Origin: Ostrea edulis
Lineage: Eukaryota
Reading direction: 5' to 3'
Assembly (NCBI RefSeq): GCF_947568905.1
Contig: NC_079167.1
Span: 6,820,001-6,884,000 of the forward strand
DNA length: 64,000 nt
Shown here: one piece after another, positions 8,984-20,699 of the stretch
Position numbering within the stretch: the first letter of the stretch is position 1
Layout: each line of letters begins with the position of its first letter
Program-made: the position numbers and the translations under genes
The notes under the pieces: model-generated
Seen by the model: only the letters and a program-made list of their open reading frames with translations
What the model was told of the DNA's origin: nothing
Databases searched by the model: none

Positions 8984-9017
<34 letters not shown>
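8984..9017. repeat. (TA)17 microsatellite in the presumed 3' UTR of the F-lectin gene
   Basis: Direct reading; it lies 80 nt past the stop codon on the minus strand. Confidence 0.95.
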
Positions 9018-9096: not shown

Positions 9097-9187
9097 CTAT
9101 CCTAGCCTCTGTGTCACTAATACTTCACACAGTAACAGGGACTGGGGACTCCTGTATCCATCTGTTCCTCTCCGGATTACTACATAT
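9097..9187 (-). CDS. F-lectin gene, last coding exon
   Basis: (R)YVVIRRGTDGYRSPQSLLLCEVLVTQRLG*; acceptor TTTCTATAG; TAG stop at 9099-9097. Confidence 0.88.
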
Positions 9188-12100
9188 CTATAGAAACAAA
9201 CGTATAGAAAAACACCTTTTTATATTCAACAGTATACCATGCCATGTCTCTTCCATATTCAGAACGGGTAATACTAGCTAGAAAATCATATATGAATGAT
9301 ACGATCCACAAATAAAATTCAACTGATTTATACCATTCTTGAGAAACAGACTTGATTTTAAAATCATATCTTTATATCAATGCTTTACACCAGAATACCA
9401 TTTATTCAGTTCCAATGGATGATAATGAAACAGACACACATTACCTTCCATTGGCGTTATAGCCACACGTGGTGATGATTGACGTGGACACCTCTGTCTG
9501 AATGAAACAAGGTGCTGGATTGCTGGAGTTTTCGGAAATGAAAATGGGTTCAGTCATTTGAATTGTGACACTTAAATTTCGAAGACCTGGAGCAAAGAAA
9601 ATTAAATATTTCTAAAAAATATCAATTATTTTTAGTCTTCTTTCCACAATATATATTTGTTTTGGTGTTCGAAAAGTAATATTCAAAGGAAAAATCAAAG
9701 TACTAGGCGTTGTGAATAGTGTGAATTGTAACATTTAATACGACTTTACCTAGACAACATTAGAAAGATGTAATACTACAAATATTTGAACAGCAGTTTT
9801 AAATACGCAACGTTAACCTAACACATATTGATAAAAGTAAGAAATAAGAAGATCAAGTACGCTATCATAATTAGAACATAGCTTCAGTGAATGAAATCTT
9901 TTTGAAAAATGACCATAACTGGTCCCTGTAATTGACGATACAACCAGTTTAATAAGTAACGTAGTAAAGAAAAAGTCCGGAAAACGGTGAAGGACAATAA
10001 TTGCTTTCGTGAAAATGGAAAAATCGATATGAAATTCAAACTTTATCTTTCAGTCATCAGTATAAACTACATGTACATGTATAAAGAGATGCATCAAGTA
10101 TAAGCTCTTGCCAGTACAAGTACAGCAACAACAAAAAGTCTGGAAAACAGTCTAAGAGCAGTAGCTTTGGTGAAAATCGGTCAATCCATATAAAACTCGA
10201 ACTTGATGTGAAGGTCATCAATATAGACACCATATAGCTGCTCATTATATACAAGCACAGCAACCAAATAAAGTCCGGAAAACTGAAGAATTTAATATTT
10301 TCTAAGTCTAAGGACAATTATTTTGGTGAAAATCGGTCGATCGACATGAAACTTGAAATTAATCTGTAAGTCATTTAAAAGAATTATACCAAATATTAGT
10401 TCATTATTTACAAGCACAGTCAAAAAATTTCCGGAAAACTTACTATGACAATCTAATTAAAACCAGACTGCTTAGATTCGTGCCGCATACTCTGCGATTG
10501 TGAGCGTATCTTAGGATCTGATTTTAATTAGATTGCTTACTATGACGGGATAACAGACAGTCAGGAGTAACACTATATGTCCAGAACATGGCGGGGGCAT
10601 AAAAACAGGGTTTTTTCTTAAATAAGTTGTTGATACCTTGATTAGGACTTCCTTTGATAATGACTGCCTCTATTGGTCTAATGGTTTTTAGGTCTACCCA
10701 CCACCATGGCCATATTTCCTCATCTACAAACAAGTAAACAAACAAATAAAAAGAAGAGTGAAAATATAGCGCTGCACTTTAAACAAAAGATTCTATAATT
10801 TATATTGATTATCTTATAAACAATGTACGTATTTCCTAGACTTCAATCCTATTAAAAGATTATATAATTTATATTGATTATCTTATAAACAATGTACGTA
10901 TTTCCTAGACTTCAATCCTATCAATTGATTATTTATAAACATAGATAGGAAGAGAGTAGACTTCGGGGTATTCTTATTGGATTCTCGTGGGCGTTTGTCG
11001 TTCTTTCTGTTTTTCCTCTGGTTACCATTTCACTGACTTCCTGTTAGCTATTCCGCTTATTGCTTTCCTTTTGATTATTAGATCATGGACTTCTTGTTAG
11101 CTATTCCGCTTATTGCTATCCGTTTGATTATTAGATCACGGACATCCTGTTAGCTATTCTGCTTATTGCTATCCGTTTGATTATTAGGTCGCGGACTTCC
11201 TGCTAGTTATTCTGCTTATTGTTATCCGTTTGATTATTAGGTCGCGGACTTCCTGCTAGTTATTTTGCTTATTGTTATCCGTTTGATTATTAGGTCGCGG
11301 ACTTCCTGCTAGTTATTTTGCTTATTGTTATCCGTTTGATTATTAGGTCACGGACTTTCTGCTAGTTATTCTGTTTGCTGTCCCTCTAATTATCAGGTCA
11401 CTGGCTTCCTGCTAGTTATTATGGGTTGGTTTTTGTTGCTATCTCTCTGATTACCAGGTCCCTTCCTTCCAGTTGCTCTATTGTTATCCCTCCAGACTTC
11501 CTGCTCGTTCTTCTCTTTGGTTTTTATGTTACACCTCGGATTACCAGGTTACTGACTTCCAGCTAGTTATTATAGGGTTTTTTGTTATCCCTCCAGGCTT
11601 CCTGCTCGTTCTTCTCTTTGGTTTTTGTTATATCTCGGATTACCAGGTTACTGACTTCCAGCTAGTTATTATAGGTTTTTTTTTGTTATCCCTCCAGGCT
11701 TCCTGCTCGTTCTTCTCTTTGGTTTTTATGTTATATCTCGGATTACCAGGTTACTGACTTCCAGCTAGTTATTATAGGTGGGGTTTTTGTTATCCCTCCA
11801 CACTTCCTGCTCGTTCTTCTCTTTGGTTTTTGTTATATCTCGGATTACCAGGTTACTGACTTCCAGCTAGTTATTATAGGTGGGTTTTTTGTTATCCCTC
11901 CAGACTTCCTGCTCGTTCTTCTCTTTGGTTTTTATGCTATATCTCGGATTACCAGGTTACTGACTTCCAGCTAGTTATTATAGGTGGTTTTTTTGTTATC
12001 CCTCCAGACTTCCTGCTCGTTCTTCTCTTTGGTTTTTATGTTATATCTCGGATTACCAGGTTACTGACTTCCAGCTAGTTATTATAGGTGGTTTTTTTGT

Positions 12101-14502
12101 TATCCCTCCAGACTTCCTGCTCGTTCTTCTCTTTGGTTTTTATGTTATATCTCGGATTACCAGGTTACTGACTTCCTTGTTATCCCTCTATGCTTACCAC
12201 TGGTTTTTTGTTTATTTCTAGGTTTTACGTCCCTTCAAGAATTTTTCACTCATATTTAAGAACCACAAATTTAGATCTATGCTTAGCGCTCAGGGCCGTA
12301 ACAGTGAGGGTTCTTCTGCGTGCCAACACCTGCCGCGACATGGGAACTCCGTTTTTAAGGTCATATCCGAAAGACCCGTGATTCTCACTTCTAGATGCCG
12401 AGCGTTTGGCAAAGGAGCAATCACTATCTATGTTTACGCGTTTAAGTTCAAACTCACGACCTCCCGGTCACGAAGGTAACGCTCTACCATTGAGCAATCA
12501 CAACCGGTTCTGCTTAACACTGAACTGACTTTCAGCTAATACTGAACTGACTTTCAGCAAATATTGTTTCCCTTGTATTTATAAATGAAGTTACTCCCAG
12601 GTAACTTTCAGAGCGACTTATCTTATCAATCGTGCAGTTCTGTAACTTGGATCGTCCTCTCCTTATTGATTATTACGATTTTTGCTTTACCTGTTTGTGA
12701 GCAGGTTTGGCTGTCTCCGTCTACGGCTAGTTCTGAGTGACCTCTGGTCTCCTCCACATGATCTGAACTTTGTTTGGTTGGTTTTTCAAGGGCAAAGTTG
12801 TTCGTGGAAACAAACTGATCTGTTGACAGAAAGTCAAGAAAACTTAGATGACATCATGTGAAGGTTCAATTCGGAAAGATAACATTCCGCTGTTATACTC
12901 TTTTAAGAAATATAAACGTGAATGCGTTAAGCAAATTTAGTGGCCGCAACCACTTGACCTTGGCTTTGATACACCATTTGGTTACGTTTTGAAACATAAC
13001 TTTTTGCATTGTACATTGATACACATCACAAATTCATGGTACAGACAACAGCAAAAATATATACAAGTACCTATGTTTACCACAAAACATTTTTTAATGA
13101 TAACGTTGTAAGTCCGACATATTCAAATATTTACATTTCCAATGCTTTGCCTTTGATATCTTTACAAATTGTAATAATGGACATTTCTTCACGAACGCGC
13201 TACAGTTGTAAACAATGCACGTGTGACGACAGAACTATTTGATAAATATAGTAAGTCTATTTTAACGACTGGGAATTTCGACAGAAATGAATATACATGA
13301 ATATATCACTGTTCGTTATCTTCGCCTTTCATGAGGGTATGGACTGCAACGATACGCGCTTCCTGAAGAAAGCCAGCGTGAAGCGTCGCAGATCATATAC
13401 CCTCCTGTATTTTTAATAGATATATATTAGAATTAGACATGTACGTGCGAAATTCACGTTGTTTTGGTTACAATAGCAATCTCAAGTCGTTGCACGATTC
13501 ATTTCGTGCAAGATCATGACTACAGTACAGGTATTCATGATTACAATTTCTTTAACATAAATTGACAGTTTACTGAGGACTAAGTGCAATTAGTCGCCAT
13601 TAGAAGAGGAAGTGAGTTGCCTTACTTACCAACGTTTTCTTCGATGAAACGTTCTCCCCATTTCCTCTGAAATCAATACAAACAGTACAGACATGATATA
13701 CCAAGAATTGCAATGTTTACACAATATATATTAGCAGTAGCAATGGGTTATATGTATGGAATAATCGGCTCACTGCAATCTTTTAATTTACATCTCAAAG
13801 GAGATATTCATAGCTGAAGGATGAACTAATCAAATTAATCAAGGTTTCTTAGATGTAATGCTTGTCGATTTGTTGAAGGCACATTATCTATTGTGAGATG
13901 ATAGGAAAACAGAAAATTCCCACAAACATGAACCTGTGTGTGAAAACTGTCCCCCAAATGTCTTTAAATTTTTGGAATCTTGATTGTGTGTCTAAAGGTT
14001 GCTGATATCAAGCATGCAAATAATAAGTATTCAAGCCTACTCTGAAGCCAGTCTCTGTATACAAAAATCAAGAACATGTTAGGTGGGTTAAATATTCATT
14101 TCATATGTGATACTCATTAATACGTTAATTGATTAGAACTTTATCGCACAAACCCGATTTCCTCATCAGGATGAATTCAGAATTCATCAATAAGCGCGCG
14201 ATTGATTGTCTTACCTCTTCTTCCTTGTTACACTGGTTGACCCTTATGGTTCCCGCCACCATTAGCACCAAAGACACCACAAACAGTAGACACCCAGACA
14301 CTAGGTACACATACCGAACTCTCCCGGACACACGTGGTCTCTTTGGTCTTGTCAGCACTGGTACGTACTTCCTTGTAATTTTGATGGACTCTTTGTCTGT
14401 GGATGTTAACAAGCGATTGTCGTCTGGTGCCGGTGAACAGCCTTCGTGTGTAAGACAACCATCTTGATTCAGTGCAGACGGGGACTGAAGAGCGTCCTTC
14501 AT
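9097..14502 (-). CDS. Type II membrane protein with a C-terminal F-type lectin (fucolectin/FTP) domain, 257 aa, 6 coding exons
   Basis: join(complement 14215-14502, 13630-13666, 12691-12819, 10637-10723, 9445-9586, 9097-9187). All introns are GT-AG and the phases chain 0,1,1,1,2. The domain reads NFALEKPTKQSS...AVDG...CSQT...PWWWVDL...C...C...GRYVVIR...LLCEVLV, matching the FTLD signature. TM YVYLVSGCLLFVVSLVLMVAGTI follows a basic stretch. The start codon is uncertain because the frame is open to an acceptor at 14580. Confidence 0.88.
9445..9586 (-). CDS. F-lectin gene, coding exon 5
   Basis: (G)LRNLSVTIQMTEPIFISENSSNPAPCFIQTEVSTSIITTCGYNANG(R); acceptor CTCCAG, donor GTAATG. Confidence 0.88.
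10637..10723 (-). CDS. F-lectin gene, coding exon 4
   Basis: (D)EEIWPWWWVDLKTIRPIEAVIIKGSPNQ; acceptor TTTGTAG, donor GTATCA. Confidence 0.9.
10785..10922. repeat. 69-bp tandem duplication
   Basis: AAAAGATT.TATAATTTATATTGATTATC... starts at 10785 and again at 10854. Confidence 0.9.
11035..12180. repeat. Composite minisatellite: ~8 x 53-bp monomers followed by 7 x ~99-104-bp dimeric units
   Basis: GACTTC (GACATC at 11141) at 11035, 11088, 11141, 11194 (period 53). GGATTACCAGG at 11538, 11637, 11740, 11842, 11946, 12050, 12154. Confidence 0.93.
12204..12508 (-). mobile_element. tRNA-derived SINE
   Basis: The minus-strand head ACCGGTTGTGATTGCTCAATGGTAGAGCGTTACCTTCGTGACCGGGAGGTCGTGAGTTTGAAC has A/B-box-like motifs. 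The body is shared with 17543-17903 and ends in a short simple-repeat tail. Confidence 0.85.
12691..12819 (-). CDS. F-lectin gene, coding exon 3
   Basis: (D)QFVSTNNFALEKPTKQSSDHVEETRGHSELAVDGDSQTCSQT; acceptor TCAACAG, donor GTAAAG. Confidence 0.9.
13333..13404. mobile_element. Short inverted-repeat relic (~20-bp arms GAGGGTAT.../...ATACCCTC)
   Basis: Imperfect TIR pair with no TSD found; it abuts the LINE-tail fragment at ~13305-13332. Confidence 0.4.
13630..13666 (-). CDS. F-lectin gene, coding exon 2 (37 nt, stalk)
   Basis: RKWGERFIEENV; acceptor ATTTCAG, donor GTAAGT. It supplies the phase 0-to-1 change needed between its neighbours. Confidence 0.85.
14215..14502 (-). CDS. F-lectin gene, coding exon 1 (cytoplasmic tail plus TM)
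   Basis: MKDALQ...DDNRLL...YVPV...RPKRPRVSGRVR-YVYLVSGCLLFVVSLVLMVAGTI-RVNQCNKEEE; donor GTAAGA. Confidence 0.85.
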
Positions 14503-14769
14503 AGTTGGGAGAAAACTACTCACATTTACAACCACGTATCGCTTACATAAAGCATTCGACGAAAAGTAGCTGAGAGAATCCTTCAAAAATCAATAGATCA
14601 CCACAATATTGTGCTGCGAGATTAATGCGATGCGTCGCTCATTTTCCTGAAAATTCAACACCTATTTGTGAAGAATGAAATAAACCCATTGACATTTTTT
14701 TTAATATTTTTCTTCAAACTAGATTCATTTATTGACATCACCAGTTTTAATTACTACTTTTTAATTACT

Positions 14770-20306: not shown

Positions 20307-20699
20307 ATGTCACCCGCTTGGTCGGAATATGTCACTAATGTGTTAATTGAGAGTGGGTACGTGTCCCGGGCCGCGATAGTGGGCGCCGATGGACGACGCT
20401 GGGCAACATCGCCCACTTTGGAACTGTCTTCTGCTGAGATTCAAGCCATCACACGGGGGTTCGTGGAACCCAGCAGTCTCCGAATGGAAGGGATATCACT
20501 GTGTGGCAAACGATACACGTGTACGCGGATGGACAGCGTTGTGATGGTTGGGCGTGAGAGTGCCTCGGGCACGGGCTGTATCGTGTATCGCTGCAGGAAC
20601 TCGCTGGTGATTGGTGTGTACGAGGATGGCGTTCACCCAGGAGGGTGTTACAACATGATATGTAAAGTAGGCGACTATCTCAGGGAGCATGGTCTTTGA
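20307..20699 (+). CDS. Profilin family protein, 130 aa, single coding exon
   Basis: MSPAWSEYVTNVLI...AAIVGADGRRWATS...GISLCGKRY...SLVIGVY...KVGDYLREHG. The W/Y pair near the N-terminus, the W(A)S motif and the C-terminal GDYL are profilin hallmarks, including the poly-proline-binding aromatics. First in-frame ATG is 20307; candidate AATAAA at 21097. Confidence 0.95.
   Translation: MSPAWSEYVTNVLIESGYVSRAAIVGADGRRWATSPTLELSSAEIQAITRGFVEPSSLRMEGISLCGKRYTCTRMDSVVMVGRESASGTGCIVYRCRNSLVIGVYEDGVHPGGCYNMICKVGDYLREHGL

Follow-up and report, generated by a model that had tools for sequence, protein, structure and literature searches.

Within a 64-kb window of the Ostrea edulis genome, which is the whole stretch of DNA analysed here and has approximately 35% G+C and not a single N, lies LOC125670894, a gene already annotated as an 'uncharacterized protein'. 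Its coding span occupies positions 9097-14502 on the minus strand (6,829,097-6,834,502 on chromosome record OX387707.1) and its isoform X1 (XP_048762289.1) comprises 257 amino acids. We propose, with modest confidence, that the gene encodes a type II membrane protein that presents an F-type lectin domain without a fucose pocket as a recognition module for something other than fucose, and that the protein is oligomeric via its transmembrane helix. LOC125670894 is a genuine gene and evolves under purifying selection, and the family to which it belongs is spread across molluscs.

Under this explanation the protein would cross the membrane once, with the N-terminus inside and the C-terminus outside, and would consist of a disordered cytosolic tail bearing a conserved [RK][KR]YVP box, a highly conserved transmembrane helix, the juxtamembrane Cys91, a helical stalk and a C-terminal F-type domain facing the cell exterior or the lumen of an organelle. 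The domain would keep its stabilising scaffold, would no longer bind fucose in the canonical manner and would act as a module recognising some other ligand, be it a protein or another kind of glycan, the whole being assembled as an oligomer through the transmembrane helix. Placement at the cell surface, the role of a receptor and a changed ligand, all put forward in an earlier sequence-only reading, are inferences.

Work on F-type lectins has treated them as soluble proteins that bind fucose in immunity and fertilisation; in bivalves they have undergone large expansions. The present family is small and membrane-anchored, and has been retained all the way from cephalopods to oysters as the sugar pocket decayed lineage by lineage; the protobranch Solemya retains the His and Arg, and the oysters are without any contact residue. 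If the proposed topology and change of ligand are correct, the family would offer a natural series on the re-use of a lectin fold after the loss of its sugar, as well as a candidate receptor with a lectin fold other than the C-type for mollusc cell biology or immunity. Knowledge of the F-type fold itself is unchanged.

The F-type domain and the former fucose site

LOC125670894 encodes one F-type lectin domain (FTLD), at residues 114-254. Pfam PF22633 matches residues 140-231 with 33.7 bits against a gathering cut-off of 27.8, the match to PF00754 is weaker and falls below the cut-off (24.5 vs 28.2 bits), and sequence matches in the Protein Data Bank were limited to three F-type lectins, 3CQO (2.9e-5), 2J22 and 1K12. 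The F-type domain was the only one that Pfam found in the 257-residue protein, with neither a C-type lectin domain (CTLD) nor a CCP domain; the separate exons gave no significant Pfam match because the pieces are too short. An AlphaFold model based on an alignment of 66 sequences has a mean predicted local distance difference test score (pLDDT) of 82, and mostly 86-97 over the domain. The top Foldseek match of the predicted ectodomain is eel agglutinin (AAA, 1K12) with an E value of 1.2e-10. When the predicted model was compared using VIA-align, lectinolysin, FBP32 and AAA gave Z scores of 18.7-19.0 with a root mean square deviation (rmsd) of 2.0 Å over 129-134 residues; generic CBM32 modules scored 16.5 at most and two chitosan-binding modules approximately 18.4. 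Hence, by sequence matches and by predicted fold alike, this is an F-type lectin domain. An earlier sequence-only reading of the locus had posited a single FTLD following a short stalk; both the Pfam search and the comparison of the model with eel agglutinin bear this out, with a stalk that is 14 residues longer than the open reading frames (ORFs) had suggested.

The AAA fold is clamped by the disulfides Cys50-Cys146 and Cys108-Cys124, and holds a cation by means of its h2DGx motif, Ser49 and Glu147 (PMC5712786). In the oyster protein, Cys148, Cys207, Cys221 and Cys248 occupy Cys columns that are almost invariant in an alignment of 66 F-type domains, as the sequence-only reading had supposed when it counted four structural cysteines. 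The cation motif is kept as A140-V141-D142-G143-D144 (h2DGx), with Thr147 in the place of Ser49 and Glu249 in that of Glu147. To judge from these aligned residues, the scaffold of two disulfides and the cation site are both retained.

The sugar site presents a different picture. In AAA, fucose is contacted by His52, Arg79 and Arg86, the Cys82-Cys83 disulfide packs against the ring of the sugar, and both Phe45 and Tyr46 contribute to the pocket that holds the methyl group of fucose (PMC5712786). Equivalent positions were identified with a profile of 50 canonical domains, to which the oyster protein aligned at 79.6 bits, and the multiple alignment agrees. According to these alignments the canonical fucose site is taken apart, every AAA fucose contact being changed or deleted (Table 1): the motif His, Arg-x-Asp-x4-Arg/Lys does not occur, its spacer is 3 residues shorter, and a degenerate loop in exon 4 stands in the place of the NRxDCCxxR of canonical domains. 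The replacement of His by Gln (CSQT) and of Arg by Ser (KGSPNQ) and the absence of the vicinal Cys pair, all of which had been read from the letters beforehand, correspond to Gln150, Ser177 and a 3-residue deletion. The loss of the triad exceeds that earlier claim, for the third basic residue and the aromatic loop of complementarity-determining region 2 (CDR2) have gone as well.

Membrane anchor, conservation and rival explanations

Only one hydrophobic segment exceeds the threshold, at residues 64-86 (best 19-residue Kyte-Doolittle mean 2.63), and AlphaFold spans it with a helix at residues 60-89 (pLDDT 93-97). It follows a hydrophilic tail, residues 1-63, which is predicted to be disordered, and precedes a helical stalk at residues 93-115. 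Six Arg or Lys and no acidic residue are found among the 15 residues on its N-terminal side (net +6), compared to four basic and four acidic residues among the 15 on its C-terminal side (net 0); by the positive-inside rule, this bias predicts that the N-terminus lies inside and the C-terminus outside. The product is accordingly best described as a predicted type II single-pass membrane protein, in which the sequons Asn184 and Asn200 and the four scaffold cysteines are all C-terminal to the segment. Since the first 63 residues are hydrophilic and predicted to be disordered, the segment would act as a signal anchor rather than a cleavable signal peptide. Before the lectin domain, the only Met that follows the start is Met81, which lies within the helix, so that a downstream start cannot yield a signal peptide. 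The tail of about 63 residues and the basic residues before a single transmembrane segment therefore stand as first read, and a cleaved signal peptide from a downstream start, the danger that the sequence-only reading had seen for itself, is excluded.

Gly70, Ser or Ala77 and Gly84 are seven residues apart and occupy one face of the helix. A face of small residues in a single-pass protein suggests specific helix-helix packing, either in self-association or with a partner, and the protein most likely forms oligomers through this face and possibly through a disulfide at Cys91, which could be an interchain bond. The only Tyr of the tail is Tyr46, within R-K-Y-V-P-V. No ITAM, ITIM or hemITAM (immunoreceptor tyrosine-based activation, inhibition and hemi-activation motifs) was seen in the tail when it was compared by eye with these patterns.

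At least 13 species from three molluscan classes share this architecture, which is to say more than the bivalves among which the sequence-only reading had proposed to look for orthologues. It is found in the oysters Saccostrea echinata, S. cucullata, Crassostrea virginica and C. angulata, the scallops Argopecten, Pecten, Mizuhopecten and Ylistrum, a mussel-like transcript, the protobranch Solemya velum, the gastropods Lottia gigantea and Gigantopelta aegis, and Octopus bimaculoides. All share the tail, the [RK][KR]YVP box, the transmembrane helix, an Arg and a Cys immediately beyond the membrane, the stalk and one degenerate F-type domain, and conservation across three classes shows that this is not a chance pattern. 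Across ten taxa, mean pairwise identity is highest in the transmembrane helix (0.48), then the FTLD (0.41), and is 0.21-0.22 in the tail and stalk. Gly70, Gly84 and Cys91 are invariant across the family and position 77 is either Ser or Ala. One gene was found per species in these searches, and the family is apparently single-copy.

Within the domain, the motif T-C-S/A-x-T-D beside the old His position is almost invariant. The old His position itself is occupied by Gln in oysters, Glu in scallops, Arg in the mussel, gastropods and octopus, and His in Solemya; the old Arg position is S, R, K or N among the orthologues, and the third position of the triad is never basic. The least degenerate member is the Solemya velum orthologue (P0173, residues ~133-264), which keeps the His and Arg-x-Asp and is without the third basic residue and the Cys pair; the scallop orthologues keep the Arg. 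From these lineage-specific states it follows that the pocket decayed stepwise within a family that was already membrane-anchored. One Mytilus edulis model (CAG2240663.1, P0048) comprises stalk and domain without tail or transmembrane segment, and has unrelated N- and C-terminal extensions; as a mussel-like Logan transcript (P0030) shows every part of the type II layout, the Mytilus model appears to have been mis-assembled.

Several points weigh against a membrane-bound, non-fucose recognition module. The orientation is predicted from sequence, and the equivalence of pocket residues is based on sequence and profile alignment. In a pairwise HMMER alignment to 1K12, Arg183 falls at the position of Arg86; we rejected this assignment because the profile and multiple alignments, anchored on a conserved Leu and Asn, place Gly181 there. 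Arg183 is replaced by Gln in Crassostrea, by His in scallops and mussels and by Asp in Lottia, and it adjoins Asn184. The polar Gln, Ser and Asn at the pocket positions could still bind a sugar. Variation by lineage at the His position (Q, E, R, H) is as compatible with relaxed constraint as with a new ligand and, given the His and Arg-x-Asp of Solemya and the Arg of scallops, loss of sugar binding need not hold family-wide. In oyster tails, DDNRLL (residues 27-32) fits the acidic dileucine pattern [DE]xxxL[LI] and YVPV fits YxxPhi; we did not build on these sorting motifs, neither of which holds in scallops, octopus and gastropods. Finally, the RNA libraries compared with the window, in which only 5-6% of the sampled words occur, gave contigs on intronic repeats at ~11090-12400 and 13125-13333 and none on an exon or an exon joint, a result that is uninformative and is not evidence that the gene is silent.

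The strongest rival, which we nonetheless consider unlikely, is that the protein is a working lectin, whose remodelled pocket, with its shorter loops, binds fucose weakly, or binds some other sugar, via Gln150, Ser177, Asn179, Arg183 and the conserved acidic pair Asp152/Glu154. An intact scaffold and cation site would suit such a function, as would the near-invariance of T-C-S/A-x-T-D, which argues for continued use of that face, and the His and Arg-x-Asp of the Solemya orthologue; among the structural neighbours at Z ~18 there are also chitosan-binding modules, in which this face serves for other sugars. However, the triad, the Cys82-Cys83 pair and the Phe45/Tyr46 loop are all changed or deleted, the residue at the His position differs from one lineage to the next, and oysters conserve a sequon, Asn184, in the former binding loop itself.

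We think it quite unlikely that the protein resides in an internal compartment (Golgi, endoplasmic reticulum or endolysosomal), for example as a cargo or quality-control factor with a lumenal domain. Golgi residents typically have a type II topology and a stem, and oyster tails carry the DDNRLL and YVPV sequences noted above; moreover, the family looks single-copy, slow-evolving and housekeeping-like rather than like an expanded set of immune receptors. Yet a tail of 63 residues is long for an anchor of the Golgi enzyme type, and the dileucine-like and YxxPhi patterns of oyster tails are not kept in scallops, octopus or gastropods.

Many type II proteins are shed, and the domain might be released as a soluble factor following cleavage of the stalk, the least conserved extracellular part and one of variable length. 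We regard this as very improbable: the O. edulis stalk sequence has no furin-type RxxR site, and the transmembrane helix and juxtamembrane residues are the best conserved of all, which would be unexpected for a disposable anchor. Lastly, the notion of an annotation artefact or decaying gene, in which a lectin pseudogene has been mistakenly attached to a transmembrane exon, is close to refuted already, since, against an absence of exon joints among the contigs of those RNA libraries and the prediction of a frameshifted, truncated isoform, there stand an intact frame over six exons with canonical splice sites and the recurrence of the architecture, in uninterrupted transcript contigs among others. 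The non-fucose recognition module on a type II anchor is the explanation that we retain.

Gene structure, transcripts and surroundings

The six coding exons are listed in Table 1. On the minus strand the ends are exact: the start ATG has its A at 14502 and the TAG stop its final base at 9097, and the translation is identical to XP_048762289.1. A five-exon join of the visible ORF pieces at GT/AG sites, giving 243 residues, was tried and rejected, because the orthologues and O. edulis isoform X2 have 14 additional residues separating the lectin domain from the membrane segment. A micro-exon of 37 nt, invisible to ORF scanning and located by tblastn with orthologues, accounts for these stalk residues together with a change of acceptor. 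It is flanked by AG at 13668-13667 and by GT at 13629-13628, as GTAAGT; the acceptor of exon 3 is 12819, the stronger site, and not 12814. Both the micro-exon and acceptor 12819 are needed to reproduce XP_048762289.1, hence the five-exon model was replaced.

Table 1. Features of LOC125670894, with positions in the 64-kb window, and oyster counterparts of the fucose-site residues of eel agglutinin (AAA)
Feature	Position	Strand	Basis
Coding exon 1, residues 1-96: ATG, tail, 'RKYVP' box (residues 44-48), transmembrane segment, Arg87, Cys91	14215..14502	-	ORF, GT donor 14214
Transmembrane codons, residues 64-86; Gly70, Ser77, Gly84 at heptad spacing	14245..14313	-	Kyte-Doolittle, AlphaFold, conservation
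Micro-exon, residues 97-108 and first base of codon 109, in helical stalk	13630..13666	-	tblastn, flanking AG/GT
Coding exon 3, residues 109-152: start of F-type domain, AVDGD 140-144, Thr147, Cys148, Gln150 (His52 position)	12691..12819	-	
Coding exon 4, residues 152-181: WWWVDL strand and degenerate loop with Ser177, Asn179, Gly181	10637..10723	-	
Coding exon 5, residues 181-228: sequons Asn184, Asn200; Cys207, Cys221	9445..9586	-	
Coding exon 6, residues 228-257 and TAG: GRYV strand, LCEV motif (Cys248, Glu249)	9097..9187	-	
AAA His52: Gln150, in 'TCSQT'			
AAA Arg79: Ser177, in 'KGSPNQ'			count (+27) and profile alignment
AAA Asp81: Asn179			
AAA Arg86: Gly181			profile alignment
AAA Cys82-Cys83 segment: 3-residue deletion			
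AAA aromatic CDR2 loop with Phe45, Tyr46: 6-residue deletion			

Exon 1 matches XP_048762289.1 at 100%. A Logan contig from a Crassostrea-like sample (L002, 941 nt) encodes an entire orthologue of 248 residues without interruption; its blocks of homology to the window stop exactly at 14215 and restart at ~12820, with 36 nt between them, matching the predicted micro-exon. Scallop, mussel-like and octopus-like members of the family are likewise represented by full-length contigs without interruption. In full-length orthologous contigs the transmembrane and FTLD parts are thus joined, the link whose absence from spliced reads the sequence-only reading had named as refuting. Two further Logan contigs, L003 and L004, which carry an ORF reading through exon 1, were dropped as evidence on splicing, for they are colinear with the genome and therefore silent on it. 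In the window an in-frame stop lies 30 codons upstream of the start, at ~14591-14593, where these genomic contigs, from other samples, read Trp; as this Trp/stop polymorphism is outside the coding sequence it is harmless, and it explains a 178-residue database 'protein' (P0001).

RefSeq also predicts an isoform X2 (XP_048762290.1, 208 residues), which uses an AG 64 nt inside exon 5, so that the exon starts at 9522; the frame shifts, the protein ends in exon 6 with '...DM' and the C-terminal half of the lectin domain is gone. The predicted isoform X2 of Saccostrea cucullata is likewise truncated and ends in 'DM'. The O. edulis isoform X2 may be either real or an artefact of prediction.

The intron between coding exons 3 and 4 contains two minisatellites, at 11030-11420 (7.4 copies of a 53-nt unit) and at 11481-12176 (6.8 copies of a 104-nt unit). 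These repeats have 99-100% matches in contigs of three small 'mollusc metagenome' RNA-seq libraries, in which no exon was matched, and are probably a dispersed, transcribed element. A (TA)17 microsatellite at 8984-9017 lies some 80 nt downstream of the stop codon and is probably within the 3' untranslated region. There is no paralogue of LOC125670894 in the window; an intronless profilin gene of 130 residues (PF00235) lies on the opposite strand at 20307-20699 (+), approximately 6 kb upstream of the LOC125670894 start.

Comparison with known systems

With AAA (1K12), striped bass FBP32 (3CQO), streptococcal lectinolysin and SpX modules the oyster domain shares a fold (VIA Z 18.5-19.0, rmsd ~2.0 Å) and a homologous sequence, including the equivalents of Cys50-Cys146 and Cys108-Cys124, the h2DGx motif and the LCEV end. 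Unlike these canonical F-type lectins, the oyster protein is, by prediction, N-terminally signal-anchored and not secreted, its loops are shorter, and it has lost the triad along with the Asp, the pair of vicinal cysteines and the aromatic loop of CDR2.

Neither departure is without precedent. We surveyed 618 F-type domains in 146 best representative matches and found His-Arg-Arg/Lys complete in 267 (43%) and none of the three residues in 68 (11%), so that F-type domains have commonly lost the triad; five of ten modelled F-type isoforms of C. gigas are likewise without it (PMC5712786). An internal N-terminal hydrophobic segment was present in eight of the surveyed proteins, five of them from this mollusc family and three long and multi-domain, and a C-terminal one in five more. 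Transmembrane domains are among those known to co-occur with FTLDs (PMC5712786, PMC12221842). The novelty suggested by the sequence-only reading thus holds in part: searches of the literature for transmembrane or type II F-type lectins in bivalves and for the LOC identifiers gave no description of this small single-domain family or of the gene, which is uncharacterised, whereas triad loss and membrane anchoring are each known already.

Coagulation factor V/VIII C domains (discoidin-type) also have the F-type fold, have lost the basic triad and do not bind carbohydrate, and it has been suggested that they were co-opted to phospholipid (PMC5712786); the oyster protein differs in that PF00754 is its weaker, sub-threshold Pfam match, and nothing in it indicates lipid binding. 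The Drosophila protein furrowed (CG9095) is a membrane protein whose FTLD has two triad residues replaced and is thought not to bind fucose; it is a large mosaic that combines a C-type lectin domain with numerous CCP repeats and a transmembrane domain (PMC5712786, PMC12221842). Furrowed and the oyster protein are alike as membrane proteins with an F-type domain lacking triad residues, but the latter is of 257 residues and predicted type II, with an N-terminal transmembrane segment and just one domain, neither CCP nor CTLD being present. The sperm bindins of oysters, like other oyster F-type lectins, belong to the same domain family and come from the same host lineage; bindins, however, are acrosomal, with 1-5 tandem domains under positive selection, whereas LOC125670894 has one domain and a membrane anchor and is conserved across Mollusca.

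In vertebrate type II C-type lectin receptors, such as ASGPR, DC-SIGN and CD23, a cytosolic N-terminal tail is followed by a signal anchor, a helical neck and a single C-terminal domain with a lectin fold. The oyster protein has an F-type jelly roll rather than a CTLD, and its tail, as described above, is without their signalling motifs; neither kinship nor signalling is implied. More speculatively, and against what we take to be the balance of probability, the family could be a pan-molluscan receptor class of more than 500 million years' standing (by our own estimate), in which the F-type fold was repurposed to a non-fucose and possibly protein ligand, held in disulfide-linked oligomers via the conserved transmembrane helix, and convergent in layout with the vertebrate receptors. 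The likeness to those receptors, to which the sequence-only reading had also drawn attention, is an analogy that holds for layout: the order of parts is the same.

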